DNA of 64,000 nucleotides, taken from assembly GCA_964036045.1 (NCBI GenBank), contig OZ038378.1, positions 173,848,001-173,912,000 on the forward strand, in the 5' to 3' direction. Source of the stretch: Eutreptiella sp. 'Long Island Sound 2002' (Eukaryota; Protista; Euglenida). This document shows, piece by piece, positions 53,185 to 60,752 of this stretch. Position numbers and translations under genes: made by a program. The notes below the pieces were generated by a model. It was not told the origin of the DNA. It saw only the letters and a program-made list of their open reading frames with translations, and did no database searches. How positions within the stretch are numbered: position 1 is the first letter of the stretch; every line of letters begins with the position of its first letter.

Positions 53185-53545
53185 GTCGGACCACTTTGAG
53201 TGAAGACCAACAAGGGTATAACGGTGTCCATGGCTTCTATCGTGCAAGGGTGGAGCACCTCTTTTTTTTGCACGGTCGTGGCAATGGAGGATTGTCCGCC
53301 ATATTTGGACACGCTCTGCAAAGGAGCCGCATGGCCATGTGCATATTTTGCTCCACCTTACTCAGTTTTGTATTTGCAGGCAGACTAGGTATCAACCCTA
53401 TGGACCTTGGCCTCATGTGCCCGAGTCTGTGTGGGCATAGGAGGAGGCAACCATTGAGGAGGAGGAAAATGATGATGGTGTTTGTTGCCAATTGTGTGGC
53501 CACCGTCCTGGTGATATATCCGAGTGTTGCACTTGCCACTTGAAC
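53185..53545 (+). pseudogene. Harbinger-like transposase C-terminus interrupted by the YR retroelement (continues at 59609-59660)
   Basis: YNGVHGFYRARVEHLF (catalytic E motif), a frameshift in a T-run, then WQWRIVRHIW...LLHLTQF...RYQPYGPWPHVP...CCQLCG...CCTCHL, matching the 3.8-4.3 kb copy. Confidence 0.75.
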
Positions 53546-53657
53546 TAAAGTTTATGCAGTAAACTTGAGTTTAAATTGGGCAAGGGGGTGGGAGGAGGGC
53601 ACCTCGTGAACACTCGCCTAGTGTTTGTTTGTTTTGTGGTGTGCCGTCGCCCTGACC

Positions 53658-54674
53658 ATGCCTGAGTCTGAGAACCAGCCGATCAGCTTTGAGGATTACC
53701 TCGAGCAGGGCCAGCATAAACTGGCCACGCAGCTGCTAAACGCATCCACGCTTCAGCAAGACACGGACAGACTCGTGGCGGCGGCAAAGACAGCGGGAAT
53801 TGACACCGTTGAACTAGCAGATCGGCCGAGGCAGAAGTATGGTCTGAAGGGATCCATGGAGGGCATCTACGAGCAAGTCGTAGCCTTCGGGACCCTCCAC
53901 AAGCGGACCTTCAATTGGAACGACTGCACGTTCTACATGTCAGCACAGCATGCCCAAGTGATCGCAGGGAACGGAACCCCGGAGAAGAACCCCGCGGACG
54001 TGGTGTCAATTGGGGGCAACTCCAGTGCCAGCGGGTCGCCAAACGACAAAGGGGTGCACGCAGACATCGAGAAAATGCGCCAAGAAATGGAGGACATGAA
54101 GCTCGTGATGGAGCAGCAACTACGAACGATACAAGAGCTACGAGCGTCCAAGACAGTGCCGCAGCTGCGGCAGGTGGTTTTCGTACTGGAAGCAGGACAT
54201 GAGATGGAGGCCAACGAGGCGAAACCTGCCTGGGCGAGAGCGATGGCGGGGGCGATGGCAGGCTGGGCGGCGGAGAATCTGCAAAGCATGCTGGAGTCTG
54301 AGTACGAGGCGGCGATGAAGGCCCTGTCCGAAGTGTGGTCACACCTGCTGTTCGAGGTCGAAAAGGAGGAAGTCAAGGCGCAGCTGGAGGCTCGAACCGC
54401 CGACGGAGCAAACGGGGCCAGGGGCTCAGAGAAGGCGAACGTCAAGGAGGAGAGAGCGAAGACCAGGCCTCAGACGGGAAAATTGGCTCCGCAGCACGTG
54501 CAAGACAGGCGGAGGGAGCGGGTGAAGGACCGCTTCACCAACATGGGAACACCCGAAGGGACGTACGAGTCCAAAGGCGGCAAGGTGCTCAAAACAGGGA
54601 AGCCCCCGCGATATCCCTGCGACGTGTGCAGAGTCAAGCACTGGTGGTTCCAGTGCCCATTCGAGAGCGACTGA
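53658..54674 (+). CDS. Gag-like protein with coiled coil and C-terminal CX2CX3HX4C zinc knuckle
   Basis: ATG five bases after repeat A1. IEKMRQEMEDMKLVMEQQLRTIQEL coiled coil; YPCDVCRVKHWWFQCP. Confidence 0.8.
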   Translation: MPESENQPISFEDYLEQGQHKLATQLLNASTLQQDTDRLVAAAKTAGIDTVELADRPRQKYGLKGSMEGIYEQVVAFGTLHKRTFNWNDCTFYMSAQHAQVIAGNGTPEKNPADVVSIGGNSSASGSPNDKGVHADIEKMRQEMEDMKLVMEQQLRTIQELRASKTVPQLRQVVFVLEAGHEMEANEAKPAWARAMAGAMAGWAAENLQSMLESEYEAAMKALSEVWSHLLFEVEKEEVKAQLEARTADGANGARGSEKANVKEERAKTRPQTGKLAPQHVQDRRRERVKDRFTNMGTPEGTYESKGGKVLKTGKPPRYPCDVCRVKHWWFQCPFESD

Positions 54675-56114
54675 ATGGAAGGGGGCCCCCGCCGCCTCGG
54701 AGCTCGGCGAGACGGCGGGCGCAGGGGGGCAGCAAGTGCCCGTGGAGGGGACGGTTGGGGGGCGGCCCTCCAGAAGATGGAGAGACTACGCACACAAGAC
54801 ACTCTGCACAGCTGGCAGACGTTTGTCCTGCTGGGATGGGAAGAATCGTCATTGGGGACATACCAGTGTCACCTGCGCAGACTGGCGGCGGTCGAGCGGC
54901 GGTTCCCATGTGATGCCAAGGAGCGGGTCCTGGAGCAGGCCATATTGGAGTGCGCCCGATTGGGGAAGTCCGAGAGCACAATCAAAGGGATCATCAGCGC
55001 AGCCGTTATGGCGACAGAAGTGCGGCTGGTTGACGCGTGCATCCCGGCCACCATCTGGAGATCCGTCAAGGCGGCGAAGAAGACAAGGAATGCGGCAAAA
55101 GAACGTATCTGGGGATCCCCGATCATGCTGCTACACATGGCAGCAAGGGCCGGCAGCCTGGAGGACTGGGCAGTGGTCGGGCTGGCCATCGTCTCGTTCC
55201 AGCTCTTCCTGCGCGTCGGAGAGGCAATCACTCTACAGCCTTGGGCGGTCGTGGACGACGCGGTACGGTTCTTCGACTCCAAGACGAGGCAGGACTGGCA
55301 ACAGAGGTCACTCACGCCGCTTACAAGGGAGTGGCTGCAGTGGCTCCAGCGCCACTTCCCAGAGCCGGCGGCGGAAGGAAGGCGGCCGTGGACGACACAG
55401 CAGCTGGAGAAGGGCATGCAACGCCTCCTCGTCGGGTCCCCATTTGAGGGTGCCCGCTGGCACGCTTGGCGCAGAGCTGGAGCTCGAGCCATGTGGACGG
55501 CAGGGGCCACAATACGGCAGGTCGCTGTGTGGGGCCGCTGGGCACGTGACTCCACCGCGCGGTGGTACGCGCATCCGACCGAAACGCAGCCCGTGCAAGC
55601 GGAAGAGTTCTGGCCGCGACCTCCCCGAGAGGGAGCTGGAGGCAGGTGGCGCAGCCGCACGACGTCCCTACGGCTCGAACAGCTCTGGCCGTCTGGGATA
55701 CGACAGCAGTGGAAGCACAGAAAGGAGCATGTGGCGTTTGGGCCCTCGAGGACCATGCCCGGGACCGACGGGCACGCTGGAAACTCGACGGCGGCCCAGG
55801 GCGGGGCGGGGAGCAAACTGCGACCGAAGCGACAGCTCGCCAAGCACAGGCAGGCACCCGACAACGGGGGCGGCAGCTCGACAGGGGCGCGGCAAGTTCA
55901 GGGTGGTGGGCAGCAAGTGCCGGCCTCCTCAACCGAGTCGGCTTCGTCCGACTGCCGTCCCACAGAGGAAGCCCTCGTCCCCTTGCGCCTGGTCCCTAAG
56001 TTTAAGAGAGGGCGCGCTGAGGAGGCCCGGGCACAGGGGGGGTTCAAGCGAGTGCGGAGAGCCACCGGCAGCGTGTCCTACTCGTCTTACTCGTCTTACT
56101 CCTCCACCGCTTAG
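54675..56114 (+). CDS. Tyrosine recombinase (DIRS/Ngaro/VIPER-type YR)
   Basis: FLRVGEA (R at 55212), DSKT, WHAWRRAGA (HxxR at 55461), VWGRW...STARWY (Y at 55566). An alternative ATG lies at 54777. Confidence 0.9.
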   Translation: MEGGPRRLGARRDGGRRGAASARGGDGWGAALQKMERLRTQDTLHSWQTFVLLGWEESSLGTYQCHLRRLAAVERRFPCDAKERVLEQAILECARLGKSESTIKGIISAAVMATEVRLVDACIPATIWRSVKAAKKTRNAAKERIWGSPIMLLHMAARAGSLEDWAVVGLAIVSFQLFLRVGEAITLQPWAVVDDAVRFFDSKTRQDWQQRSLTPLTREWLQWLQRHFPEPAAEGRRPWTTQQLEKGMQRLLVGSPFEGARWHAWRRAGARAMWTAGATIRQVAVWGRWARDSTARWYAHPTETQPVQAEEFWPRPPREGAGGRWRSRTTSLRLEQLWPSGIRQQWKHRKEHVAFGPSRTMPGTDGHAGNSTAAQGGAGSKLRPKRQLAKHRQAPDNGGGSSTGARQVQGGGQQVPASSTESASSDCRPTEEALVPLRLVPKFKRGRAEEARAQGGFKRVRRATGSVSYSSYSSYSSTA

Positions 56115-57609
56115 TGGAGAGCTGTGGCTGTGCGTAGGCGGGTTTGGCGCTTTGTTGGCGGTACTGGTGCGACTACTTTCGCGGGCGTGGTGGGTTGCGG
56201 TGGTATGCGCGTCGTACGTGGCCTGCGTGTGTCGTGTCGGGGCGGGAGTAACGTCTGATGCTACCGTTGAGGCGGAGCGGCCCTCCAAGGCCAGGTTCCG
56301 AGAGGCCATGTATCAGCTTTCGCTGCGTTTTGCGCAAAAGTGGGGTGTAGAGCAGGGACGCGCGTACAAGGCGTTGGATGTGTTCAGGAAAGAGGTGTTC
56401 CAGTTGAGTGAGGATTTGAGGGACGACAGGCCACTACTAACATGGATGCATCTGTGCGAGGCCATGGTCATGGAGGGACTTAGGGAGCTGCTGGACGGCA
56501 TTTACCCCGCCGTGCCGGAAGGTGAGGTGACTCCTGAGATAGCCCAAAAAGGGATAGGGTCAGTGGGTGCGGTTCCACTGCCGGATTGGCTGTGGCAGAT
56601 CTATGTCAGTCCGCGACAGGAGATTTTACTCTTGTCTGCTGAGGAGGTACGGAAGGTGCGAGGACCCACGGCTGACATGCTCAGGGCCATTGCAGGGACA
56701 GGGGCACTGCAGCAACTGTCTAGGCAGGAGGCGGATGCCTTGGGCATTCCGTGGTCGCCTACGGCGACTGCCTTCACCATCCCCAAAAATGAGACCAAGG
56801 CGCGACTTATCCTGCACGGGGTGCGCGCAAACAAGCGGCAGTGGGAGGGCGGGTACAGGGTGCCGCGTGTCAGCCTGCCTTAGGTAGAGTCTTTAGCGGA
56901 GGTTTTTTCGCAAGGGCTGCGTGGCTGGGGGGCCAACATCGACATCACAAATTGTTACTGGTCTATACTGCTGCCAAAGGGGAAGGGCCACCTTTTTCGT
57001 GTGGGGGGGGAGGAGTGCGTGTGGATTTTTAAGACGCTGCCGTTTGGTTGGAGCTACAGTCCACTACTGTGTCAGCGACTGCTGGCACAGTTGACGGGGA
57101 AGGTGGGGCTGGAGGTGGCAGGGGCGGTGCTGCGGCTCATGCACTACCTCGATGATTTTCTGGTTTTCGGCGACTCCGAGGCCGCCGTCGCCACAAAGCT
57201 GGCGGAGTTCAAGGAAGTTCTGAAAAACGCAGGCTTCCTGATCAGTGAAAAGTCGTCCAGTCGGCCGGAGAGGGAGCTTGTCTTTTTGGGCAAGCATGTC
57301 GACTTTGGGCGGGGGGTCATTCTGAACACCAGGCACACGTTGGAAGATGCCCTGAGCAGGTACGTACTGATGGCATCCAGGCCGGTTACGCGAAAGTCCG
57401 TACAGCGGGTGGTGGGGAAGTTGATCTGGGCCTGCAGGCCATCGCATTGGTCAAACCTTTTTCTGGCGGGGCCCATTGCGCACGTACAGTGGGGCGCAAA
57501 ATGGATGCCGCACCCGCCCACAAACCTTCTGCGGTCGCTGTCGGGTGCGTTGTGGTTTGCTGGGAGGGGCTGGTGGCCGCCTGCGTCGTCCCCCCCCCCC
57601 GCCCCCTAA
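56115..57609 (+). pseudogene. Reverse transcriptase of the YR element, with one in-frame TAG (56881-56883)
   Basis: FTIPKNETKARLIL, NIDITNCYWSI, FKTLPFGWSYSP, HYLDDFLVFG (57145) and LVFLGKHVD are all in one frame apart from the TAG. First in-frame ATG after the YR stop is 56308. Confidence 0.9.
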
Positions 57610-58090
57610 GGGGCTGTGCCCGCAGGTGTACTCCGACGCAGCGCGGGACGGAAATAGTGGCAGGCTGGGTATGTGCTCATCGGCGGGAGCACACCACTCC
57701 CTGCGTGTACCGCTGCAGAACCAGCAGGTGCTAGAATTTCGAGGGGCGGCTGCGGCCGTGAAATCAGTGGTGGGACGGAAGCTCCCTTGGGCTACATTGC
57801 ATCTGGACAACCAAGGGGTGCTCTGGGGCCTAAGATCAGGGAAAGTGGGAATTGGGCTGAGGGAGCAGCGTCGGTGTGTTCGACAAATAATGTATGCTCT
57901 GGCAAAGGGAGGGACTTCGGTGCACCTTTCGTATGTACCCGGGGCCATCATGCCGGCGGACTATCTGTCTCGGGTTCGCACCAATTTTTTTGGTGACAAG
58001 AGCATGGCACTGGGGTCTGCCTTCGACCAAATGGCAGATTTGTTACCTGTTTGCACTCAGACAGAATGTTGGGGTGTCTTGCGGTTCTGA
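57600..58090 (+). pseudogene. DIRS-type RNase H, offset by +1 from the RT frame at an 11-C tract (57590-57600)
   Basis: QVYSDAA, QQVLEFRG, LHLDNQGV, SYVPGAIMPADYLSR. Removing one C fuses it to RT. Confidence 0.85.
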
Positions 58091-58244
58091 TTTCGAGCCG
58101 TGAGTCTGCGCGCCTGTAGTGAGCCTGCGGTGGGTGTGCGTGAGCGTCGTGCGTGGGCCCGGCAGCAAGTGCCTGGGCTGTTGAGGGGAGTGTTGTGCAC
58201 TGCTCGTGGCAGAACTTTGTTTTGCGGCGCCACACGTGCTACAC

Positions 58245-58748
58245 ATGCCACGAGCTGGCAGCGCGCAGCGCGATGCGGCGCAGGTGGCGGCTAAGCGGGG
58301 GCGACGAGACGATAGACTGGTGGCGGCTCACAGGTTTGAAGAAGTATACGAGGTGGCGAGCGTGTCATATCGAACGTGGACGGTCACACCAGGGCTGGCG
58401 AACAGCAAGCGCTTTCCGGTCGTGATGCGGTTGTGCAGACGTGTCGAGGCAACATGGCGGCGCGAGACGCAACGCAAGGTCGAAGGAAAGCCGCAGGGAA
58501 CACACTCCATGGAGCGAGCGGTCTTCATCCCAGAGTGGACCGGGGCGACACGTGGCGTGCGTATCTCCGTAACGGTGGAAAAGCTGAAACACGGGCCTCG
58601 GCTACCGCCGGGGACGCAAAGGCTTTGGGCCGCCGGTTCGCCGGCTATGGTGCAGGCGGTGGCCGCAGTGATGCGGGAAGTGCAGCAGGAGGGGGGTGGC
58701 CACGGAGAGGTGGAAAGCGCAAGTGGAGATGTGGACCAAACCCAGTAA
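58245..58748 (+). CDS. Orphan ORF4 inside the retroelement, between RNase H and repeat B1
   Basis: ATG at 58245 within the 58206-58748 open frame. It ends 25 bp before B1 and has protein-like composition. No family recognised. Confidence 0.45.
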   Translation: MPRAGSAQRDAAQVAAKRGRRDDRLVAAHRFEEVYEVASVSYRTWTVTPGLANSKRFPVVMRLCRRVEATWRRETQRKVEGKPQGTHSMERAVFIPEWTGATRGVRISVTVEKLKHGPRLPPGTQRLWAAGSPAMVQAVAAVMREVQQEGGGHGEVESASGDVDQTQ

Positions 58749-60752
58749 GAAGGGTGATTTTGAATAATTTTTTTGTGCTCCCTGGTGGTGGTGGTGACGG
58801 ATGGTGCCGCCGGCACAGCAGCACAATGGTCACGCGACACTACGTTCTTTGGGTTCAGCAATGTCCACGACTGTGCACTGTTGTCTCGTCTACTGTGTGG
58901 ATGACAGTGAGGGGAGGTGGAAGGAGGTGCGTGGGGTTTGGTTGGGCGAAGCAGCAAGTGCCAAGCCCATGGGGGGAAAACCAATTTAAACTAAAGTTTA
59001 TGCAGTAAACTTGAGTTTAAATTGGGCAAGGGGGTGGGAGGAGGGCACCTCGTGAACACTCGCCTAGTGTTTGTTTGTTTTGTGGTGTGCCGTCGCCCTC
59101 CCACCCTCCCTAAAACAACGGGCGCGTGCCGGACGTGCGTGGGTGAGCGCGCAAGGTGTGGCATAGAGTAGCAAGGGCCGCGGGGCGAAGTGTGGCGCAG
59201 GGGCACAGAGCAACTCGCCAGCGAACGGCCTCGATGGGGCCGTGACACGTTTCACGGGAGAACCACCGCCCACCACAGGCACAGGTACAGGCGCGGCCGT
59301 CGCACAGGCGATGGACCAACGTATATGTGTGTCGTATAAACGTCTATCGGGACCGTGGATGTCCCCTACCATGCACCACCCGCACCACCCTGTGCTCCCT
59401 GTTGGTGGTGGTGACGGATGGTGCCGCCGGCACAGCAGCACAATGGTCACGCGACACTACGTTCTTTGGGTTCAGCAATGTCCACGACTGTGCACTGTTG
59501 TCTCGTCTACTGTGTGGATGACAGTGAGGGGAGGTGGAAGGAGGTGCGTGGGGTTTGGTTGGGCGAAGCAGCAAGTGCCAAGCCCATGGGGGGAAAACCA
59601 ATTTAAACATGTGTGCCTCTTGCATGCCCCTGCATAGTTGTACTTTACGGGGGTGTTGCTTGATCCGTGCGTGCACCGTGCGCGCACCGTGCATACTTTT
59701 GGGTATTGTTTATTACCCAGATCCAGAACGCCTGATTTTTTTTCCACAAAATGGGGTTCTTCATGGTTGTTGTGGATGCAGGACAGCTATTCAGCTGTTG
59801 GTTGACCATTGGTTGCCCCGTTTTTGAAAAATTCCCTTTCCAAATTTTTCTTTCTTTCTATGAAATGGTGCATTCTGTTGGCTGAGTGCTATGGTAAGAG
59901 GGGAGGGGTTCTTCGCCCAGAAAGGGGGGTGCGAGACGACGCCGTGGCGCTCATATGATCTGAGAGAGCGTGGTGGTGACTGCACTGAAAATAAACCCCT
60001 CTCTGTGTGTCTTGTCCCCTCCCGCTTGGGCACAACCCTTCACTGTGCGGGGGAAGGCTTTTATGCATCAGGCCAGCATAATTTCGCTGTTTCTGTACAA
60101 CCAGATAAACTTAAAATGCTTGCAACCTGACCTTTGGAACGCTAGGTGGAGAATTTCAGTTCAATTCTGGTATACTAGCAAGAGCTGCAAGATGCAGAAA
60201 TTAGGACCCTGGGACCTGTGACAAGCATCAGAACAAAAAATAAAAATTCCTGGTATGCGAGCAAGGGCTGCAGGGTGCAGAAATTGGGACCCTGGGTGTG
60301 GTTTTGTGGGAGCTGTTCAACGGGGTAGAAGCTGGGTGCATATTCCAAAAACATTGAACCGTGCGCGCACCGTGCACACACCGTGCGACAACTCCCCCTA
60401 CAAGCCTGAGTGGGTTGTTCATAGGGACAGTGGAGTACCAAGTTGAAGGCAGTTTCGTTGTTCTCATGTGGGCTTTGCTGCTTCGCCGTGCTACCAGATA
60501 GGTGACAGGTATTCTTGGGTGAGTATCCCGGCCTCTGCGTGCGCAACAACTTGGCCTAATGCACTCGCGGAGTATGAACAGTTGGGCCAACTGTTCATAC
60601 TCCGCCAGGCACTGGAATATGGCACATGTGCAGCCGCAGCATGCCGCAGCATGCTGCAGCACTCGTTTTTTGGAGCTGCACATAGGGGTTTGGAAGCATG
60701 CCGCAGCATGCCGCAGCATCCAATTTTTTGGCTTCGTGTGTCTGTCTGCCTG

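Follow-up and report, generated by a model that had tools for sequence, protein, structure and literature searches.

The RNA of a tyrosine-recombinase retrotransposon from a euglenid carries a conserved sense-strand hairpin, repeated along the element, that looks like a docking site on the element RNA and not like a per-gene splice or start signal. The conserved sense-strand fold is an observation that we hold with high confidence. Its function as a packaging signal or other RNA-protein handle, for which we infer the partner and the purpose, is a tentative assignment, and we place the probability of the combined reading, a conserved sense-strand hairpin acting as such a handle, at roughly 0.5.

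The core of the hairpin is the 12-mer GCAGCAAGTGCC, which occurs exactly at 54729, 55910, 58162, 58951 and 59568 of the window (the whole 64-kb stretch of DNA that was analysed), always on the plus strand. As the original prediction had stated, no further exact copy was found elsewhere in the window. Dinucleotide shuffles of the window gave a mean of 0.02 copies, and five copies were reached in 0 of 100 shuffles. Since the copy at 59568 belongs to B2, the 218-nt repeat of B1, the independent occurrences number four; the sites are not pieces of longer internal duplications, the longest stretches shared between them being 17-20 nt (repeat families D5 and D7). All copies share one orientation relative to the element, and no motif was found on the antisense strand in any element copy examined. 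A genome-wide count gave 2196 copies, of which only about one quarter lie in the tyrosine-recombinase family; the majority are in other repeats, chiefly a 2.26-kb LTR retrotransposon, so the motif is not private to the element.

The host element and its gene map

The element is of the VIPER-like DIRS-order type, with split direct repeats arranged A1 ... B1 A2 B2 and the gene order gag, YR, RT. Its features are as follows.

53540 to 59608, plus strand: whole tyrosine-recombinase retrotransposon, in the order A1, gag, YR, RT/RNase H, ORF4, B1, A2, unique stretch, B2
53540 to 53653, plus strand: split direct repeat A1, with copy A2 at 58986 to 59099 (family D2, 114 nt, 99% identical)
53658 to 54674, plus strand: gag ORF, with a third-codon-position excess of substitutions
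54675 to 56114, plus strand: tyrosine-recombinase (YR) ORF, in frame with gag, its conserved ATG directly after the gag TGA
56308 to 58090, plus strand: RT/RNase H coding region, broken in the window copy, with coding periodicity beginning near ATG 56308
58245 to 58748, plus strand: ORF4, 167 aa, coding by substitution pattern, of no recognisable family
58774 to 58991, plus strand: split direct repeat B1, with copy B2 at 59391 to 59608 (family D1, 218 nt, 100% identical)

The genome holds more than 20 copies at 99% identity, with 410 candidates; because this reference subfamily is so young, identity among its copies proves nothing. The copy in the window is defective: an in-frame stop interrupts it at 56881-56883 and its frame changes within a poly-C run near 57590. 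The RT/RNase H frames of other copies are open for 1187-1258 aa. The RT domain matches Pfam RVT_1 at 52.7 bits (cut-off 29.6), and the YR domain gives a weak match to Phage_integrase of 20.9 bits, below the 27.1 cut-off (E = 3.4e-4). The Gag C-terminus combines an arginine-rich stretch (QDRRRERVKDRF) with a zinc knuckle, CX2CX3HX4C, and both hardly vary from lineage to lineage; this region, with its RRRER motif, is near-identical even between lineages 69% identical in DNA, and no 12-mer in the element alignment is more conserved than the zinc-knuckle DNA.

These data correct the gene map, YR starting directly at the gag stop and RT near 56308. The sequence CTGAATGG at the YR start (ATG 54675) is conserved across lineages, and ATG 54777 is not. 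Codon periodicity in the YR/RT overlap tracks the YR frame and not the RT frame, so the long RT-frame overlap with YR is not coding, and 56115-56307 also behaves as non-coding. The earlier claim that the 12-mer precedes every ORF accordingly holds only in part: site 3 lies in a spacer before ORF4, but sites 1 and 2 lie inside the YR ORF. The distances given for it, 36 nt to ATG 54777 and 71 nt to ATG 58245, are arithmetically right, but the first leads to the non-conserved ATG. With ORFs defined by codon-position substitution patterns, motif positions do not track ORF starts, which does not support the proposal that the motif defines one mRNA per ORF.

Structure and conservation of the hairpin

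Together with the G on its 5' side, the 12-mer forms a self-complementary 13-mer with a 4-bp stem, GGCA/UGCC, and the loop GCAAG. Flanks extend the stem at every site, each with a different sequence. About seven hairpins are present per element RNA, of which five have the GCA/UGC stem and two have different ones:

54727 to 54741, plus strand: site 1, GGGCA-GCAAG-UGCCC, codons 19-22 of the YR ORF
55896 to 55933, plus strand: site 2, core 55909-55921, with an extended irregular stem
58156 to 58179, plus strand: site 3, core 58161-58173, nine pairs and one bulged U
58943 to 58969, plus strand: site 4 (B1), core 58951-58962, 30 nt before the B/A junction
59560 to 59586, plus strand: site 5 (B2), core 59568-59579, duplicate of site 4, 30 nt from the element 3' end
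53859 to 53888, plus strand: extra GCAAG-loop hairpin in gag, stem CUACGA/UCGUAG at 53867-53883 plus an outer stem
59147 to 59159, plus strand: extra GCAAG-loop hairpin, GCGC/GUGU, in the unique stretch between A2 and B2, closer lineages only

Site 1, 54 nt downstream of the conserved YR ATG, is the least conserved; it is kept in lineages at 90% identity or more and in lineage L034, and is degraded in four other deep lineages (L036 having no aligned sequence there). Site 2 falls in the C-terminal tail of YR, a region under weak constraint, and the RT ATG follows 387 nt later. Site 3 occupies the RT-ORF4 spacer, with 71 nt separating it from the RT stop on one side and 71 nt from the conserved ATG of ORF4 on the other. 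In the window subfamily the stem of site 4 consists of GCA/UGC plus an outer GGGC/GCCC, and older lineages have the full GGCA/UGCC. The gag hairpin folds at -13.5 kcal/mol in sense against -7.3 in antisense, and it persists in the diverged lineages L026 and L027, where G·U and A-U pairs replace some of its own.

RNAfold predicted the hairpin in 5 of 6 contexts, with z-scores for single 42-nt windows of only -2.3 to +0.05. Stems of 3-5 bp are weak alone. Native combinations of left and right flanks reached -14.1 kcal/mol versus -10.1 for swaps between sites, and 2 of 2000 permutations were as good. At nearly every site, folding is more stable in sense than in antisense (for example, -17.1 vs -9.5 and -19.8 vs -11.1), and the first eight stem levels of 96 hairpin contexts contained 121 G·U pairs versus 39 A·C mismatches. 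A 3' arm changed to UGCU or UGUU still faces an unchanged GGCA on the 5' side, so that pairing is kept only as G·U in the sense RNA. The element carries GCAAG 21 times on its sense strand versus twice on its antisense strand, with about 8 expected from composition, and 5 of the 21 sense copies have a stem of at least 4 bp, with 0.47 expected.

Comparison between lineages points the same way. At site 2, RNAalifold on nine lineages gave 11 consensus pairs, of which four show compensatory double changes; at site 3 it gave 6. The loop GCAAG was identical in all nine at both sites. Motif conservation was 0.78 at site 2 versus 0.34 and 0.51 in its flanks, and 0.71 at site 3 versus 0.48 and 0.46; since the lineages were picked by RT protein similarity, the sample is unbiased for the motif. 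Sites 55910 and 58162 and repeat B stand out as conservation islands in lineages 58-71% identical, and the entire 45-nt end of B, hairpin included, is conserved in deep lineages. Positional conservation in diverged relatives thus extends to these sites but hardly to site 1, which is poorly kept in the deep lineages. Sites 1 and 2 are read in two different phases of YR, and the motif has no coding role at site 3 or in repeat B, which argues for a cis element selected at the nucleotide level; on this point the original prediction was borne out. A search of 53400-59700 with the Rfam 15 covariance models, on either strand and with E up to 1, gave no match.

Possible roles of the hairpin

As we picture it, the signal is the GGCA/UGCC stem (5' to 3') with a GCAA-type loop enlarged by one base, lengthened at each site by local flanks, and its several copies would offer binding positions to a protein by which full-length retrotransposon RNA is marked. 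Our leading candidate for this protein would be the element's own Gag, with its almost invariant arginine-rich stretch and zinc knuckle, and the second a host RNA-binding protein. Binding might serve RNA selection and packaging, or stabilisation, or export.

The same hairpin, with a 6-7-bp stem, is found in the leader of the unrelated LTR retrotransposon, at 160 nt from the 5' LTR; CCUCYGCAG follows it, and the ATG of the ORF comes 16 nt after the hairpin. Retroviral packaging signals likewise lie in the leader, between the 5' LTR and the ORF. This LTR family is non-autonomous and has integrase-type ends (TG..CA, with 4-bp target duplications). In a related family, L007, the hairpin is 347 nt inside the ORF. 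Loci of these other families were chosen for the exact motif, so their conservation does not count as evidence. Because the ORF of the LTR element is not similar to the Gag of the tyrosine-recombinase element, one element-encoded protein hardly explains the sharing, and a host factor is favoured. We raise, as a speculative extension, the idea that the 13-nt hairpin is a portable module acquired separately by several unrelated retroelement families (the recombinase-type element, the integrase-type LTR element and two or more additional repeat families), the reason being that it recruits a single host factor. That factor might, for example, secure export, stability or translation for RNAs that need to stay free of the spliced leader, which would make the hairpin a 'passport' common to the retroelement RNAs of a trans-splicing organism.

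An expression signal is the alternative that survives best, and we consider it unlikely. With the help of the hairpins, a polycistronic transcript would be turned into, or translated as, a separate message for each gene, by spliced-leader trans-splicing to a nearby AG, by guiding cleavage, or by re-initiation or internal initiation downstream. Two sites lie in inter-ORF spacers or repeats, a placement that an expression role fits too. Site 3 lies in the RT-ORF4 spacer with a conserved pyrimidine-rich stretch ending in CAG about 40 nt downstream, the hairpin of the LTR family precedes CCUCYGCAG and an ATG, and the euglenid host trans-splices, spliced-leader RNA genes being present in the genome. 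Against this, sites 1 and 2 and the gag hairpin are within ORFs, as is the L007-family hairpin, and site 2 is far from the RT start. The 25 nt upstream of the four independent sites are purine-rich, with only 28-48% pyrimidine and 4-28% T. No junction of the spliced leader to CAAGTGCC (the CAG of the motif) was found in the genome, nor any within 30 nt before the ORF4 start; the leader followed by TGCC (the AAG of the motif) gave three genome matches, judged unrelated, one of which was inspected. Aligned contigs showed no spliced-leader loose end at any motif, a weak result as these are assembled contigs and not raw reads, and a metatranscriptome contig, in which DNA carry-over is possible, runs straight through site 3. 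The trans-splice acceptor role suggested at the outset thus lacks both a pyrimidine tract upstream of the motif and a junction in genome or contigs.

A signal for reverse transcription, either an initiation or strand-transfer site as in LINE/SINE 3' stem-loops or a nidovirus-style template-switch core, appears improbable. It would account for the copy 30 nt from the element 3' end in B2 and again in B1 just before the B/A junction, which is the bridge in the split-repeat replication model, for the deep conservation of the 45-nt B end, and for the occurrence of the same hairpin in non-autonomous elements that must borrow RT, but the integrase-type ends of the LTR family do not suggest dependence on the recombinase element. 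The motif is absent from the 5' leader A1 and from the sequence before gag in the integrated element. Deletion junctions at 58233/58646, 58268/58748, 58053/58779 and 57475/58779 fall at the motif in none of four cases, a small sample, and the ends of truncated copies, at 58991, 59264, 58671 and 58478, do not follow a hairpin. With no leader copy and no deletion derivative joined at the motif, the template-switch role proposed earlier is not supported.

Still less probable is a double-stranded DNA site, GGCA-N5-TGCC, bound by a dimeric protein such as an internal promoter factor or the element's own recombinase at accessory sites. The motif is indeed an inverted repeat with a 5-bp spacer, in a single orientation relative to the element. 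But the spacer, GCAAG, is its most invariant part, the arms change asymmetrically with pairing rescued by sense-RNA wobbles, unrelated flank sequences extend the complementarity, and the same loop sits on hairpins with completely different stems. Absence of function, with the copies produced by chance, composition or micro-duplications hitch-hiking in a young high-copy family, is largely refuted: the purine-rich sense strand favours GCAAG, but the 12-mer is expected 0.02 times in the window, lineages 58-71% identical retain the hairpin in homologous positions amid diverging flanks, and its stems show compensatory and wobble changes.

In the literature searched, models of tyrosine-recombinase retrotransposons rest on terminal and split repeats, and no internal cis-acting RNA signal was found for these elements. 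About seven conserved hairpins per RNA would provide a mutable handle on how such elements choose, package and express their RNA. That one genome has this 13-mer also in an LTR retrotransposon and in further repeats suggests a recognition system common to them, and euglenid retroelement RNAs that are active could be searched for with the 13-mer as a sequence tag.

Comparison with known systems

Among the closest counterparts is VIPER (with its short partner SIRE), a group of kinetoplastid tyrosine-recombinase retrotransposons with gag, YR and RT/RNase H and repeats ordered A1 ... B1 A2 B2 (PMC6681497). The euglenid element has the same gene order and split direct repeats, and both hosts are Euglenozoa, the spliced-leader sequence indicating this phylum for the host of the euglenid element. 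It differs by an additional, fourth ORF and by unique sequence separating A2 from B2. The word hairpin does not occur in the VIPER paper, which thus describes no internal hairpin repeat (PMC6681497). RT relatives of the euglenid element were found only in the same species.

Like trans-splice acceptors, the motif contains CAG and AAG in a host that trans-splices, but it has no pyrimidine tract and its conservation continues 3' of the AG as a paired arm. The transcription-regulating sequences of nidoviruses are likewise short identical cores repeated along a multi-gene RNA, some before ORFs; the euglenid motif differs in having no leader copy or junction products, a folded core and several copies in ORFs. 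LINE and SINE partners share a 3' stem-loop recognised by the LINE reverse transcriptase, as in eel UnaL2. There too, autonomous and non-autonomous elements have in common a small hairpin with a specific loop close to the 3' end, but the euglenid element has many internal copies, and the elements sharing its hairpin integrate differently (recombinase versus integrase-type LTR ends).

Arginine-rich peptides recognise GCAA-type loops, as does the N peptide on phage lambda boxB, and we take the Gag stretch to resemble the lambda N peptide, a resemblance that we treat as a lead. The hairpin shares with boxB and with GCAA-type pentaloops (the 'CGCAAYG' family of 23S rRNA) a five-base loop starting GCAA. 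In solved GCAAY loops, the first and fourth loop bases pair in the manner of a GNRA tetraloop (PMC9830547). The euglenid loop differs in its fifth base, G, and its closing A-U pair, and a similar fold and peptide binding would be predicted by analogy.

For the preferred reading, a packaging or RNA-protein handle, a parallel is in the packaging stem-loops of retroviruses and LTR retrotransposons, such as HIV-1 psi SL3, which are bound by the zinc knuckle of the Gag nucleocapsid. The euglenid hairpins differ in being dispersed over the whole RNA, in coding regions and the 3' repeat, and not clustered in the leader, and the Gag-like proteins of the recombinase and LTR families are unrelated. The likeness lies in short sense hairpins with an invariant purine-rich loop, in a Gag with a zinc knuckle and a basic stretch and, for the LTR family, in the position of the hairpin in the leader before the ORF.

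Position of the motif within the retroelement

As originally noticed, the 12-mer GCAGCAAGTGCC was found five times in the window (54729, 55910, 58162, 58951 and 59568; sites 1 to 5), always on the forward strand, and nowhere else in it; dinucleotide shuffles of the window gave 0.02 copies. Since the fifth copy belongs to repeat B2, an exact duplicate of B1, there are four independent occurrences, and the sites share no more than 17-20 nt with one another and are therefore not fragments of longer duplications. The motif is borne by a 6.07-kb retrotransposon (53540-59608), whose split direct repeats were located by repeat comparison.

Split direct repeats of the element
53540-53653, repeat A1
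58774-58991, repeat B1
58986-59099, repeat A2
59391-59608, repeat B2, 218 nt, exact copy of B1

The VIPER elements of kinetoplastids have the order gag, recombinase, RT and repeats A1 ... B1 A2 B2, and the element shares both this gene order and this layout (PMC6681497). Its RT domain matched RVT_1 at 52.7 bits, and the tyrosine-recombinase match was weak (20.9 bits, under the cut-off). The family is young and abundant: over 20 genomic copies are 99% identical, and candidates number 410. The copy in the window is defective. Its reading frame meets a stop at 56881-56883 and is shifted by a difference in length of the poly-C run near 57590 (about 57584-57603), of which sequencing runs show length variants; in other copies, RT frames are open over 1187-1258 aa. 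Exact-protein look-ups with gag, recombinase and ORF4 gave matches almost solely in one further assembly of the same organism, and an RT word-index protein search returned same-species proteins only. Two metagenome DNA scans yielded nothing and five unrelated bacterial-type contigs, respectively, and Logan contig L044 had no DNA similarity to the element. In Atlas and Pfam, ORF4 had no match and gag gave weak Gag-like leads only.

Two environmental contigs, L042 and L043 (JGI samples 3300040751 and 3300040806), were 99.5% identical to the element. The order in L043 (ORF4 end, B, A, gag) is like that of a circle junction or tandem copy, but since the 114-nt A repeat might cause misassembly, we set it aside as evidence for either. 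The B1|A2 junction is bridged by a 20-nt inverted repeat (58981-59025) with 95% complementarity. About 635 bp immediately beyond the 3' end of the element are flanked by copies of the palindrome CCGTGCGCGCACCGTGCA, inverted and direct (59661-59706 and 60342-60390), and may be a small inserted element.

Coding regions were defined from substitutions between copies by codon position. Positions 54780-55740 are coding only in the recombinase frame (rates of 0.038, 0.016 and 0.117 at codon positions 1, 2 and 3), and the long open RT frame that overlaps the recombinase gene (54736-56114) is under no coding constraint, with substitutions on its second codon positions. A recombinase tail under weak constraint (55741-56111) is followed by a region with no codon periodicity (56115-56307), and RT coding, judged from these rates, appears to begin near ATG 56308. 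The ATG at 54777, taken earlier for the recombinase start, is not conserved across lineages, and the gag stop and its following codon, CTGAATGG, are kept in all of them. The gag stop abuts the recombinase start as TGA-ATG in the same frame (54672-54677), and the surrounding CTGAATGGAAGG(G/A)GGCCCCCG is kept in nearly all lineages, which suggests that the junction may work by stop-restart coupling or readthrough.

With these boundaries, the proposal that the motif precedes each ORF holds at site 3, the only site in a spacer, with the RT stop 71 nt upstream and the conserved ORF4 ATG 71 nt downstream, but not at site 1, which lies within the recombinase ORF, 54 nt from its start, nor at site 2, in the recombinase tail 387 nt before RT. 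The B copy is 30 nt ahead of the B|A junction. Because, by direct reading, the motif encodes Ala-Ala-Ser-Ala at site 1 and Gln-Gln-Val at site 2, its conservation is at the nucleotide level, as was proposed.

Structure and conservation of the hairpin

Together with its preceding base, the motif reads GGCA-GCAAG-TGCC, so that two complementary arms of 4 nt enclose a loop of 5 nt. Of six contexts submitted to RNAfold, five were predicted to form this hairpin, and in each context the flanks extended the stem with sequences that differ between sites; in another repeat family the predicted stem was 7 bp.

Extended stems predicted by RNAfold
55896-55933, site 2, 11 irregular pairs
58156-58179, site 3, 9 pairs with a bulge
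58943-58969, site 4, outer stem GGGC/GCCC

When right flanks were swapped among seven sites, the mean energy rose from -14.1 to -10.1 kcal/mol, and 2 of 2000 permutations folded as well as the native flank pairing. At nearly every site the sense strand gave the more stable fold of the two strands, and 96 distinct hairpin contexts contained 121 G·U pairs versus 39 A·C mismatches. Since G·U pairing is possible only in the sense strand, the working form is taken to be sense-strand RNA, plus-strand single-stranded DNA being less likely.

We also scanned for any stem of at least 4 bp closing a GCAAG loop, and found two further hairpins in the element whose stems are unrelated to that of the motif.

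Additional GCAAG hairpins
53867, inside gag, CUACGA/UCGUAG
59147, GCGC/GUGU

Of the element's 21 GCAAG copies, 5 have such stems (0.47 expected), compared with 4 of 140 in the remaining window (about 3 expected). GCAAG itself is present 21 times in sense and 2 times in antisense orientation in the element, where about 8 and 5 would follow from base composition. A search of 53400-59700 on both strands against Rfam gave no match (E up to 1).

An RT-protein search gave relatives spanning 100% to 36% identity, from which twenty were taken without regard to the motif. The deep sample comprised six lineages with DNA 58-71% identical to the reference. Across these six, the 12-mer was 78% conserved at site 2 (30-nt flanks, 34% and 51%) and 71% conserved at site 3 (flanks, 48% and 46%). 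A conserved 45-nt end of repeat B includes the hairpin, and conservation was weak at site 1 (56%). Deep lineages number about seven in all and are not fully independent of one another. The usual variants of the motif (GGCAGCAAGTGCT, ..GTGTT, GGCGGCAAG.. and GGTAGCAAG..) all retain pairing by way of G·U. RNAalifold applied to nine lineages returned 11 pairs at site 2, four of them with compensatory double changes, and 6 pairs at site 3, and the loop was unchanged in both alignments. That the motif forms a hairpin in sense-strand RNA is well supported.

At about 58712-58728, four relatives at 91-95% identity (L011, L021, L025 and L028) have an additional hairpin, GGCG/GGUG-GCAAG-CGCC/CGCA; the loop in the reference copy is GAAAG. 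Hairpin sites are gained and lost among lineages. No GCAAG hairpins were present in the genome's more distant recombinase families, whose RT is 36-40% identical. A seemingly repeated word in L040 proved to be no more than its terminal repeat.

Copies in other repeat families

The motif is not confined to the element. A genome-wide count found 2196 copies of the 12-mer in the 2.28-Gb genome versus 100 for a reversed control. For the G-prefixed 13-mer with a loose tail filter, the counts were 1249 and 21. We assigned 100 listed 13-mer places to families by hand from their 3' context, and exact-context counts were of similar scale (332 for the LTR family, 228 for the B site).

Families at 100 sampled 13-mer places
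2.26-kb LTR family, 39
Recombinase family of the element, 19
L007 family, 11
Repeat with an 896-aa ORF (L014, L020), 8-9
Other, no identified family, about 22

The LTR family (examples L002:1433-7461 and L003:1597-3854; ~330 or more places genome-wide) ends in 352-bp TG..CA repeats, the 3' one preceded by a purine tract, has 4-bp target duplications and often lies in LTR-internal-LTR tandem arrays. Its single 274-aa ORF has no known domain, terminates in RRWRR and is unrelated to the element's Gag; the family is a non-autonomous LTR retrotransposon. Its hairpin, with a 6-7-bp stem, is in the leader, 160 nt past the 5' repeat, and the ATG follows 16 nt later. The L007 family, a 2.3-kb repeat (L007:2310-3649 and L007:4608-5947), shares with the LTR family a related 3' region and, in its 269-aa ORF, a related C-terminus, and has the hairpin 347 nt inside the ORF. 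The L014/L020 repeat, with a coiled-coil-like ORF of up to 896 aa and no domain match, contains the 13-mer hairpin as well. Because these loci were chosen for containing the motif, they show sharing, not conservation. The 13-mer in one or two repeat families by chance would be unsurprising; four or five are, by our estimate, more than expected.

Candidate mechanisms and proposed role

Among the signals originally proposed to define one mRNA per ORF was a trans-splice acceptor. Spliced-leader RNA genes, of at least three variants, are present in arrays at the starts of two contigs of the genome (C1 and C2), and their leader matches that of Euglena; the host is probably a Euglena-like alga. At the motif, however, the 25 nt upstream are purine-rich and the paired 3' arm is conserved past the AG. 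No leader-to-motif junction was found in the genome, before ORF4 or among assembled contigs, and one RNA-library contig runs through site 3. Drawn from genomic sequence and assembled contigs, this evidence argues weakly against trans-splicing at the motif. Contigs from three of four sequencing runs were DNA-like, repeat A being flanked by varied genomic sequence, and an estuary metatranscriptome covered fragments of the element only. The ~57 intron bases displayed for the spliced-leader RNA genes contain no CUUGC complement or GCAAG hairpin, and a minor gene variant with the same stem and a different loop (GGCAGC-UUUGG-UGCU) was judged a coincidence. In one contig (run X4), position 54851 is immediately preceded by the entire spliced leader in reverse complement. 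Trans-splicing would require the opposite orientation, and no motif copy lies at this place; the contig may be chimeric or may reflect a genomic junction. A dispersed family on C1, with at least 20 copies of a complete spliced leader followed by GTGTCTTTTTGTCCATGCTTGCCCGGGCC..., looks like retro-copies of trans-spliced RNA.

A promoter or other duplex DNA site is disfavored, since the invariant spacer, asymmetric arm changes and flank complementarity favor a folded single strand over a duplex. Template switching fares poorly too, as there is no leader copy of the motif and deletion junctions of sampled copies lie away from motifs. Complementarity to 18S rRNA for re-initiation was dropped, since 5 nt of complementarity within a 2-kb rRNA would be uninformative and the positions of the hairpins do not suit such a mechanism.

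The hairpins are spaced 0.2-2.3 kb apart along the RNA, in spacers, weakly constrained coding tails, gag and the terminal repeat, with none in the strongly constrained RT core, a dispersal more in keeping with repeated docking sites on full-length RNA than with a start or stop signal. The reading we favor, as an inference, is that the hairpin would serve as a multi-copy protein handle on sense-strand retroelement RNA, acting in RNA selection and packaging, or in stabilization or export. Arginine-rich peptides classically recognize GNRA-like loops. The Gag end, the best-conserved DNA of the element, consists of QDRRRERVKDRF and a CX2CX3HX4C knuckle and is almost unchanged between lineages with 69% DNA identity. 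Solved GCAAY pentaloops adopt a GNRA-tetraloop-like fold with an extra base (PMC9830547). By this analogy, binding of the GCAAG loop by the arginine-rich Gag end might be considered a lead; that families whose Gag-like proteins are unrelated share the hairpin favors a host factor instead.

Retroviral packaging signals lie in the leader, as does the hairpin of the LTR family. The VIPER paper mentions no hairpin (PMC6681497), and no such motif was found in the literature on Euglena or recombinase retrotransposons. Cis-acting hairpins in retroelements are of a known kind, and this one is new in the number of its copies, in their dispersal and in being shared by different types of element.
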